Assembly (NCBI GenBank): GCA_038496445.1
Contig: JALMLS010000072.1
Location: forward strand, 1-64,000
Direction: 5' to 3'
Source: Trichosphaerium sp. ATCC 40318
Taxonomy: Eukaryota; Protista; Tubulinea
Length of the DNA stretch: 64,000 bases
Under the pieces are notes generated by a model, which had not been told where the DNA came from, did no database searches, and saw only the letters and a program-made list of their open reading frames with translations. The first letter of the stretch is position 1, and each line of letters opens with the position of its first letter. Below are positions 34,769 to 48,514 of the stretch, piece by piece. Made by a program: the position numbers and the translations under genes.

Positions 34769-35725
34769 TTAAAGCACAGACACGGAGCTTGTGTTAAACT
34801 GTACGCCGCTATCATAGATAGCTCCTGGTTGAACAGAAGGTATAATGTTATTTGATGTAATGACTTGACCGTCTTCAGAGGTAACCCGGATAGACAACGG
34901 CATTGCTAATCCAGAACCTTGAACTTGAATCAGCCAATAGTTGTAGTCTTGTCTAGCTGGTTTTTCCCATGTTGTATCAGTAGCTTGCTTCAACTCAAGA
35001 AGTTTAACACCGCCTATGCCACCGACATTGAATGCTTGCAGTTCAAACCACCACTTGTTTGAACCAGTCTTCACTCTGTACTACAGGTATTCAATACAAC
35101 ATGCAAACGTATTCTCCTTTACCTTCAGATTTCCAGATACATCACAAGTTACTTGGCGATATTGTGTCTCCATTACGCCAGCAACGGGATTGGCTAGAAT
35201 AGTGAATGCCTCTTCGCTGAGATCCAAATGGTCCTGGACAGGTGAGTATAACCCATAAGAACTATTTAAACGAATTCCTTGTACCTTATCACCGCAGCAC
35301 CATTTAGGATTAGGCCCACAAGGACATTCATCTGTAACCTGTACAACAACTGTTGCGTTCGGTACACAACTTCCTTGTTTGTAGGGCGTGCTTTCAGCAT
35401 TCAGAAAGTAGGCACGTGCGTGACCGCAAAATTTCAAAGATAAAACAAGTACCTGAGGCATTGTATCTCAAAACATTCGCCACATACGCCAGCTTTATTA
35501 TAAAACGCTTCATTAGGGGCAGCGATGTGCCTGAATGGAAACGTTTTGGAAGGAATAGGTCCGTAACCACATGCACCATCGTCAGGAGTGGTGTAGTACG
35601 TAGAACGCCCAGGCTGACTTGTTGTTAGCTTATTCCGTCTTGTTTAGACTAACCTTCCAAGGCCCAAGTGGCTTGAATGAAACGCAAAGTAAAAGTAGAG
35701 TCGAGAGTAACAAAAGATAACGCAT
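34769..35725 (-). CDS. Expansin-like secreted protein (DPBB plus CBM63-type domain), multi-exon
   Basis: Signal peptide; STYY..GACGYG; CGECFEIQC; VVQVTDECP; HLDLSEEAF; YRQVTC; C-terminal RQDYNYW and PLSIRVTSEDGQ. Confidence 0.9.
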
Positions 35726-36190: not shown

Positions 36191-37572
36191 TCCACGGTGA
36201 GGACTATTTTATCATTCGGTTGGACATCAGGGAGTACCTGTAGGTCAGCTAGGTACAATATTTAGTAAAACCTGATTCTCTAGCGTATTAACGTTTTAAA
36301 AGGCGGTTTATCCAAACCGCTCTGACCTCAGGCGGCGTTGATGCGTCCTCCACCAGCAATGGTGTTGAGGTAAGAAATTTTCACGTTACCATTCATGTTT
36401 ACGCGTGTAGGACCTCCGCCTCCGCCCCTCAAGGAGATTTAAGCGACGTGTGACGCGCAAAGGCAAAATTTTGGCATCTCAACAAGAGCGCACAGAAAAA
36501 TCAGGCAGAACAAGAACACGCGTACGACGCAGGAACCCACATAACAGAGCCCAAAAAAAAGAACAAAAAGCTCTAGATGTGAACAACACAGATCAATTTC
36601 CAAAGCTCTCTGTACGCTTTCACATTGATATTATCAGCGTATACGCCCTTTTGAATCCAAAACTCGCACATCGTTCCCAAAAACCGACCATGAATTCTCG
36701 CTTATTAACGTTAATACGATTGTTAGGAATCTGAGACTATTGTATCTACAACTCCTGTTGCAACAAGCCTACAAACATACAAACAAGTACTTCAAGAGTC
36801 ACAAAGAAAGACACTCATCCTCTCTGCAACTCCTTTCAAGAAGCAACGCATGTTGGTACGTGTCCAGAAGCCAATACATAATTTTTCCATAAAAGTAAAT
36901 GAGTTTGACACGCCAATCTCAAAAACTCATTTTTGGTGACTCTTCTCCACTAACTCACCTCAGGTTGGCATAAGCAAAGTAAGAGACGAGTTTATTGCAC
37001 CAACACTTCCAGTTCCAAAAGTACAAGAAAGAATCATGCGCAAAGCGCCACGGTACAAGACATTTTTACCAAAAATGATGTATCCATTTTTTTACTAAAT
37101 TCCACCAAGTACTTCCATCACTCGTACTGTCAAGGACAAAACTTTCGTACCACTTCTTCCAGTATATCAAGCGAAACAAACAACAACACGCACATCATAC
37201 AAACAAAAAGCTCAACGTGCTGTACGCATCTATGTTTGGCCTTCACTGCTATAAATACCAATGTCTTACTTGTTGTATTAGTGGATTGCTAAGTTGCTCG
37301 CCCGTCGTGGTATTCACTTGCTTGTACCTTCATACATGTTCAATACAATGGCTCAAACAGACAAGTTGACGTTCCTTAAGAGCCCATCATCAACAAATGT
37401 AAGATTGTTTGTCTCACACGTGATATTTTTAATCTGATTTTTTTAGTCCGGTATTCTAGCGTATAGACCTAAAAATCAAACATCCAAACTTCCTTCATTT
37501 ACATCATGCTCAAGACAACTTCAAAATCAATTTCAAAACACATGGCTACCACAAACAATACTAAGCTGTTAG
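36191..37572 (+). CDS. Uncharacterised basic, low-complexity spliced ORF upstream of and overlapping hisB; start codon unresolved
   Basis: Frame stays open across 7 GT-AG introns (donors ~36253, 36370, 36612, 36856, 37053, 37222, 37399) to TAG 37570-37572. First in-frame ATG is only at ~36850. Confidence 0.55.
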
Positions 37573-38513
37573 AAGCAACAAAACTCATCCTTTGTACGCC
37601 TAAAATCTCCTTTAGTTTTTGTCCTACTGTTTGTAAAATCTAACACGTGGTCTAGCTTCCTCCGATACAGAACTAGCTGCTGTGATGACTAAACTATCAT
37701 CAAGTGATGCACTTAAACTTGTAGAAAAAGTGTCTACTGCTTCAAAAAGTAAACAGAAAAAAACAACTTTAAGAAAAGCCACTGTAGAGCGTAAGACAAA
37801 AGAGACTCAAATCAGTGTATATGTCAATTTAGATGGTATGTGATATAGGCACTCTTTTAGCGCAAATACTAAATTAGTTTACTTTTGTAGGTTCAGGAAA
37901 AAGTAAAATCGATACAGGCATTGGTTTTTTGAATCACATGTTTGATGCTTTATCTAAGCATAGTATGATCAATATTGAAGTTACTTGTAACGGAGACTTA
38001 CACATTGACGATCACCACACAAGTGAAGATTGCGCATTGGCTCTAGGATCAGCCATTAACAAAGCCATTGGAGACAAAAAAGGCATTACAAGGTTCGTAC
38101 TTTTTATTTTAGTTTCTTTGCGCCTCTCTCCCATTGAAGCTTACTTTGAATCACTAATGCATTGCTAAAGATTCGGTATTGGATTTGCACCTCTTGACGA
38201 GTCATTGTCACGTGCTGTTGTAGATTTCTCAGGACGTCCATCAGCCCACGTTGATCTCAAGTTCACCAGAGAAAAAATTGGCGATATCTCAACTGAAATG
38301 CTCACTCACGTGTTTGAGTCAATTGCTATGAACGCAAACATGACACTACATGTTGAAGTACTTAAAGGAACTAATAACCACCACAAGGCAGAATCAGCAT
38401 TTAAAGCCCTTGCCCAAGCACTGCGACAAGCTGTCGCAATTGACCCAAAAAGACTAGACCAAATCCCATCAACAAAAGGAACATTAGGAGAACAACAAAG
38501 TCAAAAACCATGA
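37542..38513 (+). CDS. hisB: Imidazoleglycerol-phosphate dehydratase with N-terminal extension, 4 exons (alternative in-frame ATG at 37506)
   Basis: RKTKETQISVYVNLDG, TGIGFLNHM, GDLHIDDHHTSED, APLDESLSRAVVDFSGRP, GTNNHHKAESAFKA, IPSTKG. Confidence 0.96.
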
Positions 38514-40459
38514 GCACAGACAAACCTAAAGGTAAATAGAGAACATTTGAATCCATTGGAATACTAACGATATTTGCGCATAGTTATTTTGGTAAAGACG
38601 TCTACGTCCAACTTGGGATCGATTATTGCTGCTTTTGAACGCTGTGGAACAACCCCAGTTATCTCAACAGATCCAAAAGATATCGAAACAGCTGATCATG
38701 TTGTTGTACCTGGAGTTGGAACAGTCGGACAAGCTATGGCCGTCATTAATGAAACAAAAGTGAACAAAGTTTTATGTGAACGCATCAGAAAGGTATGTAC
38801 ATACTCCACTTACGTTGTTTTACTAATATACTTCTTCCTAAAGGGACTTCCTTGTCTGTTTGTATGTGTTGGCACTCAACTATTGTGTAATGATAGCGTG
38901 GAGAACCCAGGAGTACAGGTAAGATTTTAATGACCATGCATTTTGAAAGAAAAGTCTTGACACGATTTAGGGCCTCGGTATTATTGATACAACAGTCCAG
39001 CGATTCCCAGATACTGTGGTTGTACCACAACAAGGATGGAACAAAGTTTACGTTGAAGGAAAGAGTAACTATATTGATGAGGATGGCTATGCGTTCTTTT
39101 CAAACTCTTTTTGCTTGAGACACAAACCTAAGGATTGGACAGTTACAATGTGTACTCACGCAGGTCCATTTATTGCGTGCATGGTACGAACACTACTACC
39201 AATAGCCCAATGTCACTAAGCATTATAATTTTAGGAATACGGTGCTATCCTTGCTTGTCAATTCCATCCTGAACTCTCTGGCACTTTCGGTTACAGCGCA
39301 CTTCGAAACTGGTTGAAAAAATCAAAATCACTCGTAAAACCGTACACTATCAGAGGCGGCGAGGATATCATAATTGCAAAAGATGATGCTTCATCAAACC
39401 TTGCAAGAAGAGTAGTGCCTTGCTTAGATGTGAGGAACGGTGTTGTAGTAAAGGGTATACACCAACTTTTATTTCCATGTTTGTATTTAATTGCTAATTG
39501 GTTTTAGGTATTAAGTTTCAAGGACTTAAAGAAGCCGGTGATCCAGCCGAGCAAGCTGCAAAATACGAAAGAGATGGTGCTGATGAGTTAGTCATGTTAG
39601 ATGTCTCTGCAACACCTGAAGGCCGTAAAACATGTACGATTTTTTGAGCTTCATTGCTTTTTCTTATTGTTGTTTAGCTCTCGAGACAATCAGGATTATT
39701 CGTGGTCAACTGTCTATTCCACTCACTGTAGGTGGTGGTATAAGGACTGTTGATAACGCACGGGCAATTCTAGAGGCTGGCGCTGATAAAGGTATGTTAA
39801 TGGCACTCAGTCTAGAAGTTGTTTAACAATCTAACGCGTATTTTTTAGTATCCATCAACACAGCTGCTGTGAGAAACCCTCAAATTCTTACTGACCTTGC
39901 ACACCAATTCGGTCGTCAATGTACTGTTCTAGCCATTGATGCTTCGTCTTGTGGTGAGGGCAAATGGGAAGTTGTTGTCAAGTCTGGAAAAGAACGTACA
40001 GGCATGGATGTTATCGAATGGGCAAAATCTGCTGTAGAAAAAGGAGCAGGAGAGATCTTGCTTACTTCCTGGGACAGAGATGGCACCAAACAGGTACTAC
40101 AAAACGCCCTCACCTGTGTAATAATATTCGATGATAGGGATATGACATTGAGCTACTTAATGCTATGCGCAAGGCCGTGAGCGTTCCAATTGTTGCATCA
40201 GGTACAATTCTTTGAATGTTGTTAGTATACTGTTTTGTTTACGCTTTATCTTTAGGTGGTGTTGGAAACCCAAAAGATCTAGTCGATGGACTTAAAGCAG
40301 GAGCCGATGCTGTATTAGCTGCATCAATTTTTCACTACGGCGAGTATACGCCAAACCAAGTTAAAGATATTCTACAAAAAACCCATAAAATCAGACACGT
40401 TAATGTACGGTTGCTTTATTAATAACTCTTATCAACTAAAACTATTATTTCAGAAATGA
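38510..40459 (+). CDS. hisHF: Fused imidazole-glycerol-phosphate synthase HisH-HisF, 11 exons (ends at 40422 if the last intron is retained)
   Basis: HisH: [29 protein letters not shown]. Linker, then HisF: [60 protein letters not shown]. Confidence 0.95.
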
Positions 40460-42246
40460 TAGTTCCTTCAATCAGTATTAAAGGTGGAGAGGCTTTACAG
40501 CTGTCAATTGACGATCCAAGCGTCGTATTGGTAAATGCTGGTGATCCAGTTCCTCTAGCAAAGAAGTATGGTATTATTGGCGAAATAACAGTTTTTGACT
40601 TGGATGCTTCCATGGGCACTGGATCAAACGAATCGACCATCAAATCATTACTCAAGCTTGCAAATTGTAGAGTAGGAGGTGGTATTAACACTGTGAAAGC
40701 AGGTATTGATTGGTTGAACGCTGGAGGTAAGCAACTCGTTTGTTGTTGGCCAAGAGTACTTATGTTTTCTGTAGCCTTCAAGATAATTCTTGGGACCGCA
40801 TCAACTCCTGAAATTCTTGCAATGCTTCCTAAAGATAGAGTGGTCTCATCTTTAAAAGTAATGACAGGAGAAAATGAGGTCAGCAGCTGGAAGACTGATG
40901 ACGGCAAACTCTTTATTGAAAAACTTGAAGAACTCAAACCGTTCGTCTCTGGATTCCTCGTTACCTTTATTGAACACGAAAGGCGTATGGAAGGTATGGC
41001 CATAAATAAGTACAGCGCATTGTTCTAAGTTACATGATAAAGGGATTGATGTCACAATGGTGAGAAAACTGAAAGAAGCTGTTGGCAAAGCTCATGAATT
41101 AACTGTCGCTGGAGGCATTTCATCTGTTGGTGAAGTCAAATCTCTTGCTGACATGAAAGTACGACAATACAGTCTCGACGAAGACGCTTTTACTAAATTA
41201 TATTACTTTTTAGGTCAAAGCTCAAGTCGGTATGGCCATACACACAGGAAAGCTAAACCTAGGCGAGGCGTTTGGTAGCCTTATCATTTCTGATCGTCCG
41301 GATGGTTTGTTCCCAACCGTAGTCGTTAATGAGTACCAGCAAGCTCTTGGTTTTGTGTATTCGTCGAAAGAGAGTATAGCAAAAGCCGTGGAGATGCAAG
41401 CAGGTGTTTACTGGTCTAGAAAACGAGGACTTTGGATTAAGGTAAAAATCATTGATTCAAATTTTCATTGTTGACATCATTCAACTGCAGGGTCTCACTT
41501 CTGGTGCCACGCAAAAGCTCATTAGTATAAAAACCGATTGTGATACCGATTCTCTATGCTTTGTAGTCGAACAAAAAGGTACTAAAATAGCCCAAGAGCC
41601 TTCCTCGGAAACTCATCCCTTTTGTAGACCCTGGATTTTGTCACTTGAACAGAATGTCATGTTTTGGTCGTGGTACTGGTTTACCAGATCTCATGAATAC
41701 CCTAGAAAACAGGTACCATCATTAACAAGTTTAGTATCACATTAACATGTTTTTAAGGAAAATAAACGCACCCAAGGGATCGTACACAAAGAGACTTTTC
41801 GATGACCCTAAACTGCTTGATGCCAAAATTTTGGAAGAAGCCAATGAACTTATTGATGCTACAGAGAGAGAAAATATGATCGGTGAAGCCGCCGATGTTA
41901 TATACTTTACACTTGTCAAATGTGCCAAACACAACATTTCGTTGACGGACGTGGAAAAAGGTGCGGAAATTGTTTTGGAATTTTTTTTTGCGGAGAAATT
42001 TTGTCCCTGGTTTCTTTCTGACGTAACAATTTGTACCACACCATACGAGGCGTAGTTTGACTAGATTATCATTAAAATAGTCGTATGATGGGCTTTTAAA
42101 GGCGGTTTTAAAGTATTTTATCTAATAAGCCTTTAGAACTCGACAGACGCGCTAGAAAAGTATCTCGTAGAAAAGGAGACGCTAAGGAACATATTGTAAA
42201 ACAATTAGAAGCACACAGAAAACAACAACAAGAAGAATCTAAATAA
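40456..42246 (+). CDS. hisIE: HisA-like TIM barrel fused to PR-AMP cyclohydrolase (HisI) and PR-ATP pyrophosphatase (HisE), 8 exons
   Basis: TIM barrel: DLDASMG, RVGGGI, ILGTA, TVAGGI, VGMAIHTG. HisI: YWSRKRGLWIKGLTSG, DCDTD, FCH, SCF. HisE: GSYTKRLF, KILEEANEL, EAADVIYF, RRKGDAK. Confidence 0.93.
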
Positions 42247-44973
42247 TGGCAACAAGAAACCTTAAAATCGTTACAGAAAGCGACGTAGCTGCTATTAGCA
42301 CTAAAACTGATCCTGTCAGCCCAGAAACACTCGGTAAAGCCGCACAAATCGTCGCAGACGTTCGCAAACGTGGTGATGAGGCTTTACAAGAGTATGCCGT
42401 TAAATTTGGAGACCTGAAGGTATGAATCACTTTCAAAACGCTGTGCGTTCACACTTTTCGCTAAACATCGTCATCAGGAAGGCGAAAGCATGATAGTTCC
42501 AAAGGAGGACCTCAAAAAAGCCTTTGAAGCTCTAGACAAAGAACAACAAGAAATGTTGAATCGCGTTGCCTCGAGGTATTTTTTTGGCCTACTTTTTTTG
42601 AATTGAAAGTTTTTTTCAAATGTTTCCACGTGTCTAACCCTTGTTAAGGATCAGAACCTTTGCGCAAGCACAGAGAAGTAGTGTCACAAACATGACACAA
42701 CAAATTGACGGTGGAAGCGCTGGGCACTATGTTGATCCAGTAGAATCTGCCGGTTGTTATGCACCAGTACGCCATTATTCATTTTTAATTGCTCGAGTCT
42801 AATGTACGATTAAGGGTGGTCGCTACCCATTGCCTTCGAGCGTGTTGATGACATGTATTACCGCACGTGTTGCTGGCGTTAAGAACGTTTGGGTCGCTTC
42901 TCCAAAGCCACAACAAATCACAAAGGTAGGCTATTTTAAATCAAGTCTCAGAGTCTTACTTTCATTAGGCTGCTGCATATGTCGCTAACGCAGATTCTCT
43001 TCTTTGTGTTGGCGGAGCTCAAGCCATCGCTGCTTTGGCTCACGGCACAGCTACCATTCCAGCATGTGATGCAGTAGTAGGACCAGGAAATGCTTTTGTA
43101 ACTGGTACACACTTATTTTTCTCATTACTGGATTAATTTCTGTTTTAGCTGCCAAACAACTCATTGCTGGTAACGTTGCTATCGATACCTTGGCTGGGCC
43201 TTCAGAATGCTTAGTAATCGCTGACGAACAGGCAAACCCAGCAATCGTAGCTGCTGACCTTTTGGCTCAGGCTGAACACGATACTGACGCTAGAGCTATA
43301 CTCATTGCGCTTTCTCAAAAAGTAGCTGATGATGTTGACGCAGAGATCTCAAAGCAACTCGAGACCCTCCCTACAAAAGAAGTCGCTGCTGCAGCTTTAA
43401 AGAACAGTTTCTGTCTTATTGCTAAATCAAGAGAAGATGCTGCCAAACTCGCAAATCAAATCGCCCCAGAGCACTTAGAACTCCACGTTCAGCGTACACA
43501 CGAACTTGAGCGCAAAGTACAACACTACGGTGGTCTATTTATCGGTCAAGGCGCAGGCGAAGTCCTTGGTGATTACGGTGCTGGTCCAAACCACGTACTA
43601 CCAACACGTGGAGCAGCACGTTCTTCTGGCGGTCTATCAGTTTTCACATTTTTGCGTATTCGCACGTGGATGAATATTACAAATCTTCATGGTACGTAAA
43701 TTCTCCAAGAGTTTTGGTTTCTTCGTATGCTTTGTACTGGATTAACGTGTTTCCTTTAGCTGCAGAAAAGCAAATTAACGATAGTGTTATGCTTGCTCGC
43801 TTAGAAGGTCTTGAAGGACATGCTAGAGCCGCTGAGAAGCGTCTAGAACTCGTTAAAGATGAAAGTGTTCTTCCACCATCTGTTCTCAGAATGGGACTAC
43901 CAAAGGGAAGAATGGAACAACAGCTCATTAAGATTCTAGGAGGTACGCTTGTTTTTGAGTTTGTAGCGGTGTTTTTTTCCCTTTTTCTAAGATTGGATTG
44001 TAGACGGCGGTATTAAGATTGAAGTACCACCTAGAGGTTACAGACCTTCTATTTCACTAGACGGTGTTGATGTAAAGATGCTCAAGCCTAGAAATATTGT
44101 TGAAATGATCTCCGTCGGTTCTCGTGACGTTGGTTTTAGTGGCAGAGATCTTGTCGAAGAATTAAATGCTAATGTCAAGTTTGAAATGGATCTCAAGCTC
44201 AACCCAGTCAAGATAGTAGCAGCCGCACCTCATGATTTATTGGTTCAAGACGCAAACGCACCACATGGATGGAGACTTAAGGACTTGAATAGAGTACGTT
44301 TCTACTCAACAATTTTGAGATACTAATTTTACTATTTTTTAGCCATACCGTGTTGCCACTGAATACACTACCATTACTGCAAAGTGGATTAAAGAAAACA
44401 ATCTCAATGCTACCCTCGTACACACTCGTGGATCTACCGAGGTGTTCCCACCAGAGGATGCTGACTTTATTGTCGACAACACAGCAACTGGCTCTACACT
44501 GAAGGCTAATAAGCTAGAAATCTTTGACATCTTAATGAGATCTACTACTTGTATGTTCTCTAACGCCGAAGCTTCTGAAGACCCTCACAAGCGTAAGATC
44601 ATTGATACACTGAAATCTACCATAGAAGCAGGTACGCGAGTTACTACACACGTTTTTGTTTTCAGCAACTAAATGTTGCATTAGTTCTCACTGCTAGACC
44701 ACGCTACATGTGCGAATTCCATCTTGAAGAACACAGACTCGAAAGCGCATTGGTAACACTGCCTTGCATGCGGTCACCTACCGTTCACCAACTTGTTGGC
44801 GACAAGAACGGTTACTCTCTAAGAATCTGTTCAGACATGGTACATCTCTATCTTTACTGTTAATGTCTTCAAACCTAACAAATACTTAGAACCCACACAA
44901 ACTCATCAAAGCAATTAAAAGAGCTGGAGGACAAGATATAGTCATAACTAAGCCGCTTTTCGTCATCCCATAA
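42246..44973 (+). CDS. hisD-hisG: Histidinol dehydrogenase (HisD) fused in frame to long-form ATP phosphoribosyltransferase (HisG), 11 exons
   Basis: HisD: [78 protein letters not shown]. Then HisG: [48 protein letters not shown], and a C-terminal regulatory domain. Confidence 0.93.
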
Positions 44974-45057
44974 GACCCACGATAATACAAAAAACCAAAT
45001 AAAAAAACCCAAAAACCATTTAAAAAAATACAACATAAAAAAAAAGCCAACCATCAA

Positions 45058-47424
45058 ATGAGCGATAATTCACTTGACTTTATCCGACAAGACCTACCAG
45101 ACCTCAAGGTCTACTCCCCAATCAAGCCTCTGGAAGACAGAGCCGTTCAATTTGGCTTCTCAGTCGAGGCACGTGCACAAAATCAAAAAAAAAACTGGGC
45201 TTCGAAATTAACTGAAAGAAATAGGAGCTAGCCAAATTGGATGCCAACGAAAACGCTCACGGCCCACCTAAGGGTCTCGTAGAGAAACTTAAAACTATCA
45301 ACTATCACATTTACCCTGATCCAAGCCAAATCAAGCTTCGCGAAGGACTATCAGCAGTGGCTGGCATTCCTGCAGATCAAATCGTTGCTGGCGCTGGCGC
45401 TGACGAATCAATTGATTTGGTACTCAAAGTAGTTGGTCCAAACCGACCAATTATCATTACAAGTCCTACATTCTCAATGTACAAGTACTTTTCGGTACCA
45501 TACAATCAAAGTGTCATTAACGTGCAAAGGCTAAGTACGTTCAAACTTTTCGTGTATTTTTTTTTGGGTTGCAAGTATTCTCGTTTCTTGAATCTTGTTC
45601 TCTAGCTCACTTCTACTATTTAGTGCCTAGCTTTGAATTGGATGTACCAGGTATAATTAAGGCCATTAACGAGCACAAACCTGGCGCTGTATTCATTACG
45701 AATCCAAACAACCCTACTGGCAACATTGTAAAAGATGATGTCATAGTACAGCTCTGTGCAGTATGCAAAAAAACAAATTTATCCATCTATTCTCGCGTCT
45801 AACATGTCATCGAAATAGGAAAGCCGAAAGACTCGTACACTTGTTGTTATAGATGAGGCGTATTGCGAATTTGGTGGAAATGACTGTGTACCTTTATTGA
45901 AAGATAATGCCAACTTGGTCCTCTTACGGACATTCAGGTATGTCTATTGATGCAATTTTATTCAAATTCCTTTACTAAGCAAGCTTAGCAAATGGTCAGG
46001 ACTAGCTGGCTTACGCATTGGATACTCCATAAGCGCAAAGGCAATCGCCAATGTAATGATGTCTATCAAACAACCATACAACATTAGTGTTGCTGCTGAT
46101 GTTGCGGGACGCTACGCTCTAGAAAAGCGTGATGAACTTCTGGCCACCTGCGCTCAATTAATGTACGACTATTATAAAATACATCCTTGCCTTACAAAGT
46201 TATAGTAAGGAACGAGATCGCATGGTATCTCTGCTTGCTGAATTTTCCGATTTGATTCAACCGCTCCCAACGTACTCTAATTTTGTTCTATTCACTGTCA
46301 CTGGCGGCAATAAAGTTGCAAAACAACTACATGATGACTTGGAAAGACTTGGAGTGCTTATACGGTACTATGGCGGCAAACCAATCCTACAAAACTACAT
46401 CAGGTAATTTTTTTGACAACAAAAAACACTAAAGAACACCAGTCACGACTATCAAACTCACTTTTTTTAGAATATCTGCTGGACGCTCTGGAGATACTGA
46501 CAAGCTCATAGCGGCAATGCGATTGCTCCGCGATTCAAAAATACGAGAGAAAGTGACGAAACCAAAGGCCGTAAGTCCTGTTGCCAATACGAATTTGCTT
46601 TAGCTGCAATATCATAGTTTTTTATTTCTTATTCTATTGCTTAGATAATATTTGACATGGATGGTGTTTTGGCTGAAGTGTCGTCCTCATACCGTCAAGC
46701 GATCATCCACACTTGCAAGCATTTTGGAGCGAATATCACACGTGATGACATTGCTGAAAAGAAGGCATCTTCTGGTTTCAATAATGACTGGGATTTATCT
46801 CTTGCACTTATCACTGAACATGTTAAAGAAAATGTGCCATCTTTCCAACAAGTCAAAGATGTATTCCAAGACCTTTACCTTGGCACTGACGAAAAAAAGG
46901 GATTCTACACAACAGAGTCTCTCATACCTTCTAAATCCTTACTGGCATTTTGTGCTAACAAGGTACCACTTGCTATTGTAACTGGAAGACCAAAGGACGA
47001 AGCAAAACTGTACGCTCAAATTGAAAATCAAAAACACAAATTCTTATGTTTTGTTTTAGGTTCCTAGATCTATACGGCATTGGTGACTACTTCGGTCATG
47101 CAGTGTGTATGGAAGATACAGAAAAAGGCAAACCTGATCCTCAACCCGTTAAAAAAGCTCTGGATCTTCTTGGAATCACAGCAGGCAAAGATGGTGCGCG
47201 TTTTGTTCTACAAACCAACATTGACATTTTCATTTTTAGTAATCATGATTGGTGACACTCCGGATGACTCAAGAGCAGCTGTTGCAGCTGGGATAGTCGG
47301 ACTGGGTATTTTACCACCACATGATAAGGCAAACAAAAAACTTGCTGCTGTAATGACATCAGATAGTGTTGGTGCTACCTACGTTCTCCAAGACTTGAAT
47401 GAATTGCGACTACTCTTGTCGTAA
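45058..47424 (+). CDS. hisC: Histidinol-phosphate aminotransferase (HisC) fused to a HAD-family phosphatase (putative histidinol-phosphatase), 10 exons
   Basis: HisC: KLDANEN, YPDP, GAGADESI, NPNNPTG, VIDEAY, RTFSKWSGLAGLRIGY, SNFVLF, YIRISAG. HAD: IIFDMDGVL, IVTGRP, KPDP, MIGDTPDD. Confidence 0.93.
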
Positions 47425-48443
47425 ATAAAAAACAATTTTTCTTTCAACGAGTCTTTCATTGGTTTTTCGTATATTACAGGCCATTTACACTGTCTCGTTC
47501 GCATTTCACATTGCTGGTCACCAAAAAGCAACTGAGACAATCCAAGTACTTCTTTGTGTAACAAACGTGAAGGTGTTTACGTTCCTCAAACACACCAAAC
47601 TCAAAGTGGGGTATTTCCGTGTAGAAAAGAGCAACAAGAATTACTGTTGGTTAATTTGAATTTATTACTATTATTGTGGTTAATTACTAGTATTTGTAAT
47701 ATTCAAGTACGCTGCAGTTTTCAAAGTAAAGGCGATTGGTCATAAATCTACAACCTCACGCTATTCGTTTGCTGGAAACTACTTTTGTATTGAGTCAGGA
47801 ATAGCTTGTGAAACATTGGGAATTTTCAGTTGTTGTGGAGTTTGTCGGAGCGTATCGATCAACATCACACTTCCAGAACGCGCAATTATAGATCAACCAA
47901 TAATGATACAAGGTGATCTTAATATTGTCAGTCAGGCAACACGCTCTTCCTGTAATAAGTAGGTACTTTAGGTGCAAGGTGGCCGTTGTTTGTTTTCGTG
48001 CATAGTTTTTATTCAGGAGCGTATCTAGTTTTAAGCACAACGCATTGACTGCTATAATGCAGCGACGTTAGGGTATTTTTAGCAAACATACCTGGTGCTA
48101 ACACTACCGAGTACATGCTTGCATGGCTACATGCGTTCTGTGCCAGTTCCTAACAAATGCAAGAAAATTCTGATTTTTACCATTTTCAATTTTTGAGGTC
48201 AGAATTTTTCATGAGATTTTCTCACGAACACCAACAGGTACATGACCCAATCCTCTGGTACAAACATTCAACACCCTATGCTAACATATCAGATGTATGC
48301 CTTTTGTGAAAAAGTAGTTCTTGGTGCACAAACGCTAACTTTTTGTACAGTTGCACGGCAAAAAATTTTTTGCAATGTCACATTTTTCGATTTTTGGCAT
48401 CACTGACCTCTCCACCATGCATAAAACGTTGCAAAAAGGTATT

Positions 48444-48514
48444 GGGCCTTGCCTGGAATCGAACCAGGGCCACTTGAACCCAAATCAAGTATTTTACCAC
48501 TTAACTACAAGGCC
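48444..48514 (-). tRNA. tRNA-Pro(UGG)
   Basis: Minus strand GGCCTTG..CAAGGCC acceptor stem, anticodon arm CTTGA-TTTGGGT-TCAAG, T-arm CCTGGTTCGATTCCAGG, and a downstream T5 Pol III terminator. Confidence 0.93.

Follow-up and report, generated by a model that had tools for sequence, protein, structure and literature searches.

Five co-oriented histidine-biosynthesis (his) genes lie on the + strand at 37506-47424 of the window, the whole stretch of 64,000 nucleotides (nt) analysed here from the amoebozoan Trichosphaerium sp. ATCC 40318 (assembly GCA_038496445.1, contig JALMLS010000072.1, positions 1 to 64,000). They encode HisB, HisH-HisF, HisA-like-HisI-HisE, HisD-HisG and HisC-HAD. In the textbook view eukaryotic nuclear genes are monocistronic and pathway operons are prokaryotic, and the known eukaryotic exceptions are either trans-spliced to single-gene mRNAs or small pairs read by leaky scanning. 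We propose that this cluster is expressed differently, as one spliced polycistronic mRNA translated by termination-coupled reinitiation, an explanation to which we give somewhat better than even credence. The genes (g1 to g5), the junctions between them and the associated elements are as follows:

36292-37505, + strand: long 5′ leader with a candidate sixth open reading frame (ORF), containing a 41-nt intron (36370-36410)
37506-38513, + strand: g1, HisB (imidazoleglycerol-phosphate dehydratase), 3 introns, 270 amino acids (aa)
38510-38513, + strand: junction 1, ATGA, the start of g2 overlapping the stop of g1 (-4 nt)
38510-40459, + strand: g2, HisH-HisF fusion, 10 introns, 480 aa; 6 introns backed by RNA joints
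40405-40453, + strand: last intron of g2, RNA joint 40404>40454 in runs X1 and X2
40456-42246, + strand: g3, HisA-like-HisI-HisE, 7 introns, 439 aa
42244-42248, + strand: junction 3, TAATG, the stop of g3 and the start of g4 sharing one base (-1 nt)
42246-44973, + strand: g4, HisD-HisG fusion, 10 introns, 725 aa; 7 introns backed by RNA joints
44974-45057, + strand: junction 4, an 84-nt spacer without ATG, with AATAAA at 44998-45003
45058-47424, + strand: g5, HisC-HAD (histidinol-phosphate aminotransferase and candidate histidinol phosphatase), 9 sequence-based introns, 608 aa
47424-47429, + strand: candidate poly(A) signal, AATAAA overlapping the stop codon of g5

The stop-start overlap is exact at all three overlapping junctions (3/3), and one of the three is present only in spliced RNA. 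At junction 2 (-4 nt) the ATGA arises only once the intron 40405-40453 is removed (AAT|AAA TGA), and this single excision creates the stop codon of g2, the overlap with g3 and an AAUAAA hexamer together. The AATAAA at 47424-47429 is likely the poly(A) signal of the unit. Gene models were obtained with a splice-aware dynamic program anchored on RNA joints and then curated by hand, g5 and the end of g3 against homologue motifs; a low intron penalty in the program produced wrong models of g1 and g5. The introns of g5, junction 4 and the leader rest on sequence and length arithmetic. The cluster holds 39 introns of 41-89 nt, one of them 176 nt, nearly all with a GTA donor, and splicing them out leaves no in-frame stop in the gene models. 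The first-pass annotation had described five same-strand genes with about 39 introns splicing into intact frames and intergenic distances of -4, -4, -1 and 84 nt; the genes were rebuilt with that intron count and all four distances were reproduced. The features of the window also agree with the GC and intron figures of the Trichosphaerium genome paper (37.7% GC, 8.7 introns per gene, mean intron 75 bp; PMC10521059).

The most direct evidence for a shared transcript comes from RNA contigs aligned to 6 kb of the window (38300-44299). These derive from four runs of two studies (X1 and X2 from study P1, X5 and X6 from one sample of study P4), which hold 21-46% of the sampled words and carry the labels "RNA?" or "?". 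There are 23 RNA joints in this interval; the 15 listed are all GT..AG and coincide with modelled introns (15/15), indicating that the runs are spliced RNA. The spliced X1 contig 1 (3975 nt) runs from upstream of g1 through junctions 1 and 2 into g3. Junction 1 lies inside one contiguous piece of it (38300-38529), after which it passes the g2 introns and the joint 40404>40454, and length arithmetic places its right end at the exon end 41441. Junction 3 is bridged by X1 contig 2 (42137-42388) and by X2 contig 9 (42135-42417), the latter with splices on both flanks. X1 contig 3 (3946 nt) starts near 42390 and continues for 2437 nt past 44293, against a spliced distance of 2439 nt from there to the stop of g5; from these lengths, it very probably spans junction 4 and g5 in full. 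Co-transcription across junctions 1-3 is thus supported, not proven. The polycistronic transcription that had been suggested from the layout gains spliced contigs bridging three junctions and, by length, the fourth, but contigs cannot prove a single molecule.

The same contigs show that the frames are real and maintained. They differ from the window at 34 positions and by zero indels, in material from two studies, so the frame changes are not assembly errors; the first-pass annotation had named indel errors at the overlaps as grounds for abandoning its reading, and no such error separates RNA from DNA here. Synonymous third-position changes in the modelled frames make up 29 of the 34 differences (P(>=29/34 synonymous) = 6e-10, at a chance rate of 33.5% with transitions alone). 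The ratio of synonymous to nonsynonymous changes is 2:0 in g1, 8:2 in g2, 7:1 in g3 and 12:2 in g4, and the excess is significant separately in g2, g3 and g4. Because the excess is found frame by frame, these three frames are under purifying selection and each is translated, whichever mRNA it is read from, which the excess does not show. Selection in three different frames excludes both a pseudogene and a single continuous frame.

A second organism provides a further line of evidence. The closest relative found is the his cluster of L013, an 8597-nt Logan contig of run SRR10580902 that bears the protein P0288 and shares 53-58% amino acid identity with g1-g4 and 40% with g5. It is intronless, with the order ORF1 / IGPD / HisH-HisF / HisA-I-E-D-C-HAD / HisG, the fourth of these being an ORF of 1474 aa. 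The spacers are 0 nt (IGPD/HisHF), 9 nt (HisHF/A-I-E-D-C-HAD) and 1 nt (A-I-E-D-C-HAD/HisG), and ATG is absent from the 179, 107 and 99 nt ahead of the HisH-HisF, HisA-I-E-D-C-HAD and HisG starts. ORF1, at least 369 aa long and free of stops where the other two frames have 15 and 11, overlaps the start of IGPD by 22 nt and has no Pfam match. Shine-Dalgarno-like motifs were not found. Be the run RNA or DNA, L013 is a sequence of the eukaryotic clade without room for promoters between its genes. The apposition of stop and start is kept over a deep divergence although the pattern of fusion differs, which argues for a function. The HisG of L013 (7696-8592) is 26% identical to the HisG part of the window (43760-44973), and the latter is 45-46% identical to the HisG of bacterial operons; because of these values, the two amoebozoan clusters are taken to hold HisG of different lineages, at different positions.

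The sequence ahead of the internal starts was analysed in the spliced mRNA from the ATG of g1 to the stop of g5 (7659 nt). A content over the 60 nt ahead of the g2, g3, g4 and g5 starts is 53, 50, 57 and 67%, compared with 32% for the whole mRNA, placing these tracts at the 97th-99.7th percentile of its windows. The nearest upstream ATG in any frame lies 157, 97, 147 and 168 nt away, in a stretch that holds 151 ATGs at a mean spacing of 51 nt. By minimum free energy, the -90 to +10 windows of g2-g5 fall at the 86th, 98th, 96th and 100th percentile, at the least stable end. These leader-like tracts double as the C-terminal tails of the upstream proteins, past their conserved domains, and the upstream frame stays open through the A-rich tail up to the next AUG.

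In the mechanism that we propose, the locus would be one RNA polymerase II transcription unit whose spliced mRNA, some 7.7 kb long between the ATG of g1 and the stop of g5 and with a leader of at least ~0.9 kb ahead, bears five separate his frames and possibly a sixth upstream. Ribosomes ending one frame would restart at the AUG that overlaps or follows its stop, at AUGA, AUGA and UAAUG or past the AUG-free 84-nt spacer, and the A-rich, unstructured, AUG-free tails would aid this restart. The first stop has ~36 exon junctions after it and would make the mRNA a target of nonsense-mediated decay unless downstream translation cleared those junctions, and such clearing would itself select for coupling. 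Both the single molecule across all frames and reinitiation as the mode of translation are our inference from the layout and the contigs. Reinitiation is favored because of the exact overlaps, their conservation in L013 and the match of AUGA and UAAUG to the stop-start geometry of viruses and LINE elements (long interspersed nuclear elements).

Several observations weigh against this explanation. Eukaryotic ribosomes as a rule reinitiate inefficiently after a long ORF and depend on special elements to do so. The calicivirus TURBS (termination upstream ribosomal binding site) motif, UGGGA, is absent (as TGGGA) within 120 nt upstream of the internal starts, and no stable upstream structure of the TURBS or pseudoknot type was found ahead of them. 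Coverage by RNA contigs is sparse at 41500-42028. The contigs are available without read-level 5′ or 3′ ends or strand, and may merge overlapping transcripts. The last intron of g3 (41961-42136) has two alternative donors, 41961 and 42083, with one common acceptor. Donor 41961, which is a GTG inferred from the sequence and not of the GTA type, yields the canonical C-terminus of HisE and the TAATG overlap, while donor 42083 (GTATGA), used in X1 contig 2, closes the g3 frame at 42055, so that 136 nt would separate it from g4 and the -1 overlap would be lost. Alternation between the two donors might switch translation from coupled to uncoupled.

Nested transcripts are the main rival explanation, each having its own capped start 100-170 nt upstream of an AUG, with shared or staggered poly(A) sites and only the first frame translated; the locus would then be a compact co-oriented cluster, functionally monocistronic. 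Contigs cannot separate such a set from a single polycistronic mRNA, and an assembly would merge the overlapping transcripts. Internal cap-dependent 5′ untranslated regions would have the same A-rich, AUG-free character, each internal AUG being the first for 97-168 nt. The AATAAA hexamers at junction 2 (after splicing, within 40402-40459) and in the spacer of junction 4 could end shorter mRNAs, and the small runs X5 and X6 cover g4 with g2 and g3 uncovered. Nested transcripts, however, give no reason for the upstream frame to stay open to exactly the next AUG at 3/3 overlapping junctions, nor for the three L013 junctions with spacers of only 0, 9 and 1 nt. The intron that makes the stop of g2 ends 2 nt before the AUG of g3, so that a g3 mRNA must start within the coding exons of g2. 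Contig depth is equal over junctions 1 and 2, which argues weakly in the same direction. We therefore regard nested transcripts as unlikely, albeit as a rival to be taken seriously.

Alternatively, a polycistronic precursor might be processed to one mRNA per gene, for instance through spliced-leader trans-splicing at the acceptors 40453 and 42136, which lie 2 nt and 109 nt upstream of the AUGs of g3 and g4; unprocessed precursors would then account for the bridging contigs. Yet both acceptors are seen cis-spliced, junction 1 has no acceptor nearby, and no spliced-leader-like loose ends were found at the junctions, where loose ends are sequencing adaptor only (contigs may drop rare forms). To our knowledge, spliced-leader trans-splicing is not known in Amoebozoa, and we consider this route very unlikely.

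Rejoining of the frames into a giant fusion resembling that of Acanthamoeba, by -1 frameshifting or alternative splicing, would be in keeping with the shift of -1 at each of junctions 1-3, with the A-run CAAAAACC before the stop at junction 1 and with a weak donor, GTCAAA, 29 nt upstream of the used one, which would join HisB to HisH in frame. The RNA contigs take the strong donor at junction 1, and the ATG of each downstream frame sits right on the stop. For junctions 2 and 3, reading back in frame from the downstream ATG meets stops within 0-2 codons, a slippery heptamer is absent and no in-frame alternative acceptor exists; these stops rule out a frameshift or splice fusion there, and we hold the rejoining of frames to be highly improbable. 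The spliced coding sequence, 7.66 kb long, contains 151 ATGs in any frame, which ruled out leaky scanning. Finally, it is scarcely credible that the overlaps are an assembly artefact or the decaying pseudogene of a fused gene: relatives have a single ORF where these frames break, and such breaks do resemble indel errors or pseudogenes, but RNA contigs from two studies match the DNA without indels, no in-frame stops occur over 39 introns, every frame has a synonymous excess and a start codon stands at each break.

The assignment of the genes to the histidine pathway rests on domains that can be recognized exon by exon. Stop-to-stop translation of the + strand over 37.5-47.4 kb gives short open segments that bear every histidine-pathway domain, and single exons match the Pfam families IGPD, His_biosynth (twice, HisF and HisA-like), PRA-CH, PRA-PH, HisG, Aminotran_1_2 and HAD. 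The HisH exon by itself matched no Pfam family and is identified by its collinear alignment with HisH-HisF fusion proteins. Histidinol dehydrogenase is identified by homology of the large HisD exon to the Pfam Histidinol_dh protein P0001, a HisD-HisG protein (68% identity across 180 residues), to which g4 is 57% identical. The product of g5 is 40-41% identical to the HisC-HAD portions of the Protostelium protein P0002 and of L013. Fusions of HisC to HAD (46645-47424 in the window; P0002, P0019, P0031 and L013) recur across many unrelated eukaryotes, including Protostelium, Copromyxa and a marine picoeukaryote, and because of this recurrence the HAD domain is a strong candidate for the histidinol-phosphate phosphatase of HisC-HAD lineages.

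Pathway coverage amounts to 9/10 activities across the five genes. The first-pass annotation had counted all steps as present; the domains are indeed there, but the HisA step is doubtful. The HisA-like domain of g3 (40456-41160) has lost both catalytic aspartates (PSID>PSIS and ALDxxxGE>SLKVMTGE, LD>LK) together with further conserved residues. Both aspartates are kept in Acanthamoeba, Thecamonas and the other aligned fusion proteins, and L013 keeps the first (PSID). A functional ProFAR isomerase (HisA) should accordingly be located elsewhere in the genome, or the step be bypassed or replaced.

The transcribed region extends well ahead of g1. X1 contig 1 reaches 1491 nt upstream of 38300, corresponding to ~890 spliced nt upstream of the ATG of g1. 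Once the intron 36370-36410 is removed, the leader at 36334-36448 aligns with L013:55-120 at the nucleotide level, and this conserved stretch lies ~1 kb upstream of the IGPD start in both the window and L013. Besides encoding GGxDxSS..VEDLRL, it folds into a hairpin (GTCCTC...GAGGAC), the inner stem of which differs between the window and L013. A candidate leader ORF extending through to 37572 can be constructed from the sequence, and its similarity to ORF1 of L013 is borderline (the observed score is reached in 6/300 shuffles). The conserved stretch could belong to a sixth cistron (ORF1 in L013) or act as a regulatory RNA element.

Homologues were collected by an exhaustive HMMER search with the large HisD exon, followed by Pfam on the matches, and their architectures fall into several forms. 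HisD-HisG is found in haptophytes and uncultured eukaryotes; HisA-I-E-D-C-HAD, complete or partial, in Protostelium, Phalansterium, Copromyxa and Arcella; and HF-A-I-E-D-G in Acanthamoeba, Stygamoeba, Paramoeba and Thecamonas. In Acanthamoeba castellanii the latter is a single gene, verified by polymerase chain reaction, for a 1682-aa "heptafunctional" His protein (Rice et al. 2018, PMC6029752). Concatenated, g2, g3 and g4 are collinear with this seven-domain fusion (803/1605 aligned residues identical; reference P0276) and with that of Thecamonas, and junctions 2 and 3 fall within variable inter-domain linkers of the fusion proteins. The Acanthamoeba fusion, the HisHF of Planoprotostelium and the HisD-HisG of a metagenomic eukaryote (L001) are stand-alone genes; the cluster is therefore not universal in Amoebozoa.

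In an unrooted maximum-likelihood tree of A-IE-D, computed with a quick search setting and including many rows of unusual composition, the window falls inside a clade with Protostelium, Phalansterium, Arcella, Copromyxa and P0288 (97% in the Shimodaira-Hasegawa-like approximate likelihood ratio test, SH-aLRT), and the bacterial A-IE-D fusions all fall in one separate clade (100). Two of the 27 intron positions of g2-g4 are common to Acanthamoeba, which has 31, in the same alignment column and phase (chance, 0.17). Tree placement and shared intron positions together point to vertical amoebozoan descent, with some introns being old. They also ruled out a recent bacterial transfer.

Fused hisA-hisI-hisE-hisD is encoded within operons in bacteria of several phyla. 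That of Ca. Palauibacter (Gemmatimonadota; L010) has the order G-C-B-H-F-[A-IE-D], with 4-nt overlaps at G/C, B/H and F/A; a deltaproteobacterial metagenome-assembled genome (L011) has B-H-F-[A-IE-D]; and Phycisphaerales (L012) has G-C-B-[H-F]-[A-IE-D]. The order in the window, B-[HF]-[A-IE]-[D-G]-[C-HAD], is a rotation of that of L012. Identity to the proteins of bacterial operons is 51-52% for B, 46% for HF, 45-48% for A-IE, 50-56% for D, 45-46% for G and 29% for C. The first-pass suggestion of an operon acquired from bacteria therefore stands as operon ancestry, to which order and fusions testify, and fails as a recent or organism-specific event, the genes nesting among amoebozoan homologues. 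These comparisons support an ancient acquisition common to many eukaryotes, for which the unrooted tree gives no direction of transfer.

The layout would thus descend from an ancient operon of the type B-HF-[A-IE-D]-G-C, which other Amoebozoa and apusomonads would have welded into giant fusions, while this lineage keeps or has re-created separate frames. A-IE-D is fused in bacteria and in every other sampled A-IE-D sequence of eukaryotes, so a secondary split of that older fusion, re-creating a stop-start overlap, is the simplest account of the IE|D boundary; B|HF and HF|A might go back to the operon itself. Taken as a whole, the picture is that of a nuclear his operon of bacterial-type inheritance that gained 39 introns, forms one mRNA, is read by stop-start reinitiation on A-rich tails, has long been kept in at least two amoebozoan lineages and represents an intermediate giving or receiving the giant His fusions; this composite has, in our judgement, a little less than an even chance of being correct.

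The bacterial operons also hold an observation of their own. Their fused hisA-hisI-hisE-hisD (L010-L012) and the fused hisH-hisF of Phycisphaerales are of the kind usually met in eukaryotes as HIS4 and HIS7, and gene order in these operons matches that of the eukaryotic fusion proteins. Such bacterial fusions of the HIS4 and HIS7 type bear on the origin of the whole eukaryotic histidine pathway.

Around the cluster, a gene for an expansin-like/barwin-like (DPBB) secreted protein lies on the - strand at 34772-35650, oriented away from the his unit and separated from it by ~0.6-1.8 kb of divergent intergenic DNA. A tRNA gene (48444-48500+, - strand; Rfam 38 bits, cut by the search edge) lies ~1 kb downstream of the stop of g5. 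The Rfam search gave no match inside the his cluster.

If the proposed explanation is true, cellular housekeeping genes can be translated by efficient reinitiation past long ORFs, and the signal for this would be an A-rich, unstructured, AUG-free tail combined with a stop-start overlap, unlike the structured viral elements. The locus would represent a living intermediate between operon, gene cluster and multi-domain fusion, on which the much-debated path from operon to fusion could be tested directly. A further question is how a multi-cistron mRNA whose first stop is followed by dozens of exon junctions escapes nonsense-mediated decay. Automatic annotation will get such loci wrong, and it becomes worthwhile to screen the genomes of this and related amoebae for stop-start overlaps.

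In spliced-leader operons (nematodes, kinetoplastids and tunicates), spacers carry trans-splice sites and the products are single-gene mRNAs. The his cluster shares with them same-strand genes on one precursor, and differs in having no spacer at junctions 1-3 and no leader seen in the contigs. No description of a his cluster that is polycistronic or operon-like turned up in a literature search covering eukaryotes, Amoebozoa, Physarum and Trichosphaerium, and the words polycistronic, operon and histidine are absent from the genome paper (PMC10521059). Polycistronic nuclear genes as such are already known from green algae, fungi and Cryptosporidium, as is the amoebozoan His fusion; what is apparently new is this arrangement of the his genes, with a substantial chance of its being more than that. 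In green algae (Gallaher et al. 2021, PMC7896298), polycistronic nuclear genes, for which leaky scanning has been proposed (PMC11291117), likewise have several ORFs per nuclear transcript, short gaps between ORFs and a layout kept between species. In the his cluster, by contrast, the ORFs overlap stop to start and form one metabolic pathway, and their number of ATGs makes leaky scanning implausible. RNA viruses and the SART1 LINE, which terminate and reinitiate at AUGA or UAAUG (PMC10275272, PMC2699510), have the identical stop-start geometry after a long ORF; those systems need structured RNA elements, whereas the regions upstream of the his starts are among the least structured and lack UGGGA, and here a cellular housekeeping pathway is involved.

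The fungal genes HIS4 (HisI-E-D) and HIS7 (HisH-F) have the same partial fusions, probably of the same ancestry, in a dispersed and monocistronic form (PMC6029752). Bacterial his operons resemble the cluster in their rotated gene order and in the 4-nt stop-start overlaps at B/H and F/A; unlike it, they are bacterial and intronless, their D is fused to IE and not to G, and their hisC, at its low identity, lacks HAD. The Acanthamoeba fusion has the same order, HisH-HisF-HisA-HisI-HisE-HisD-HisG, with ~1600 residues collinear at ~50% identity, and is likewise intron-rich. There, however, a single ORF forms a stand-alone gene, whereas in Trichosphaerium g2-g4 are three ORFs in three frames, with HisB and HisC-HAD belonging to the same unit.

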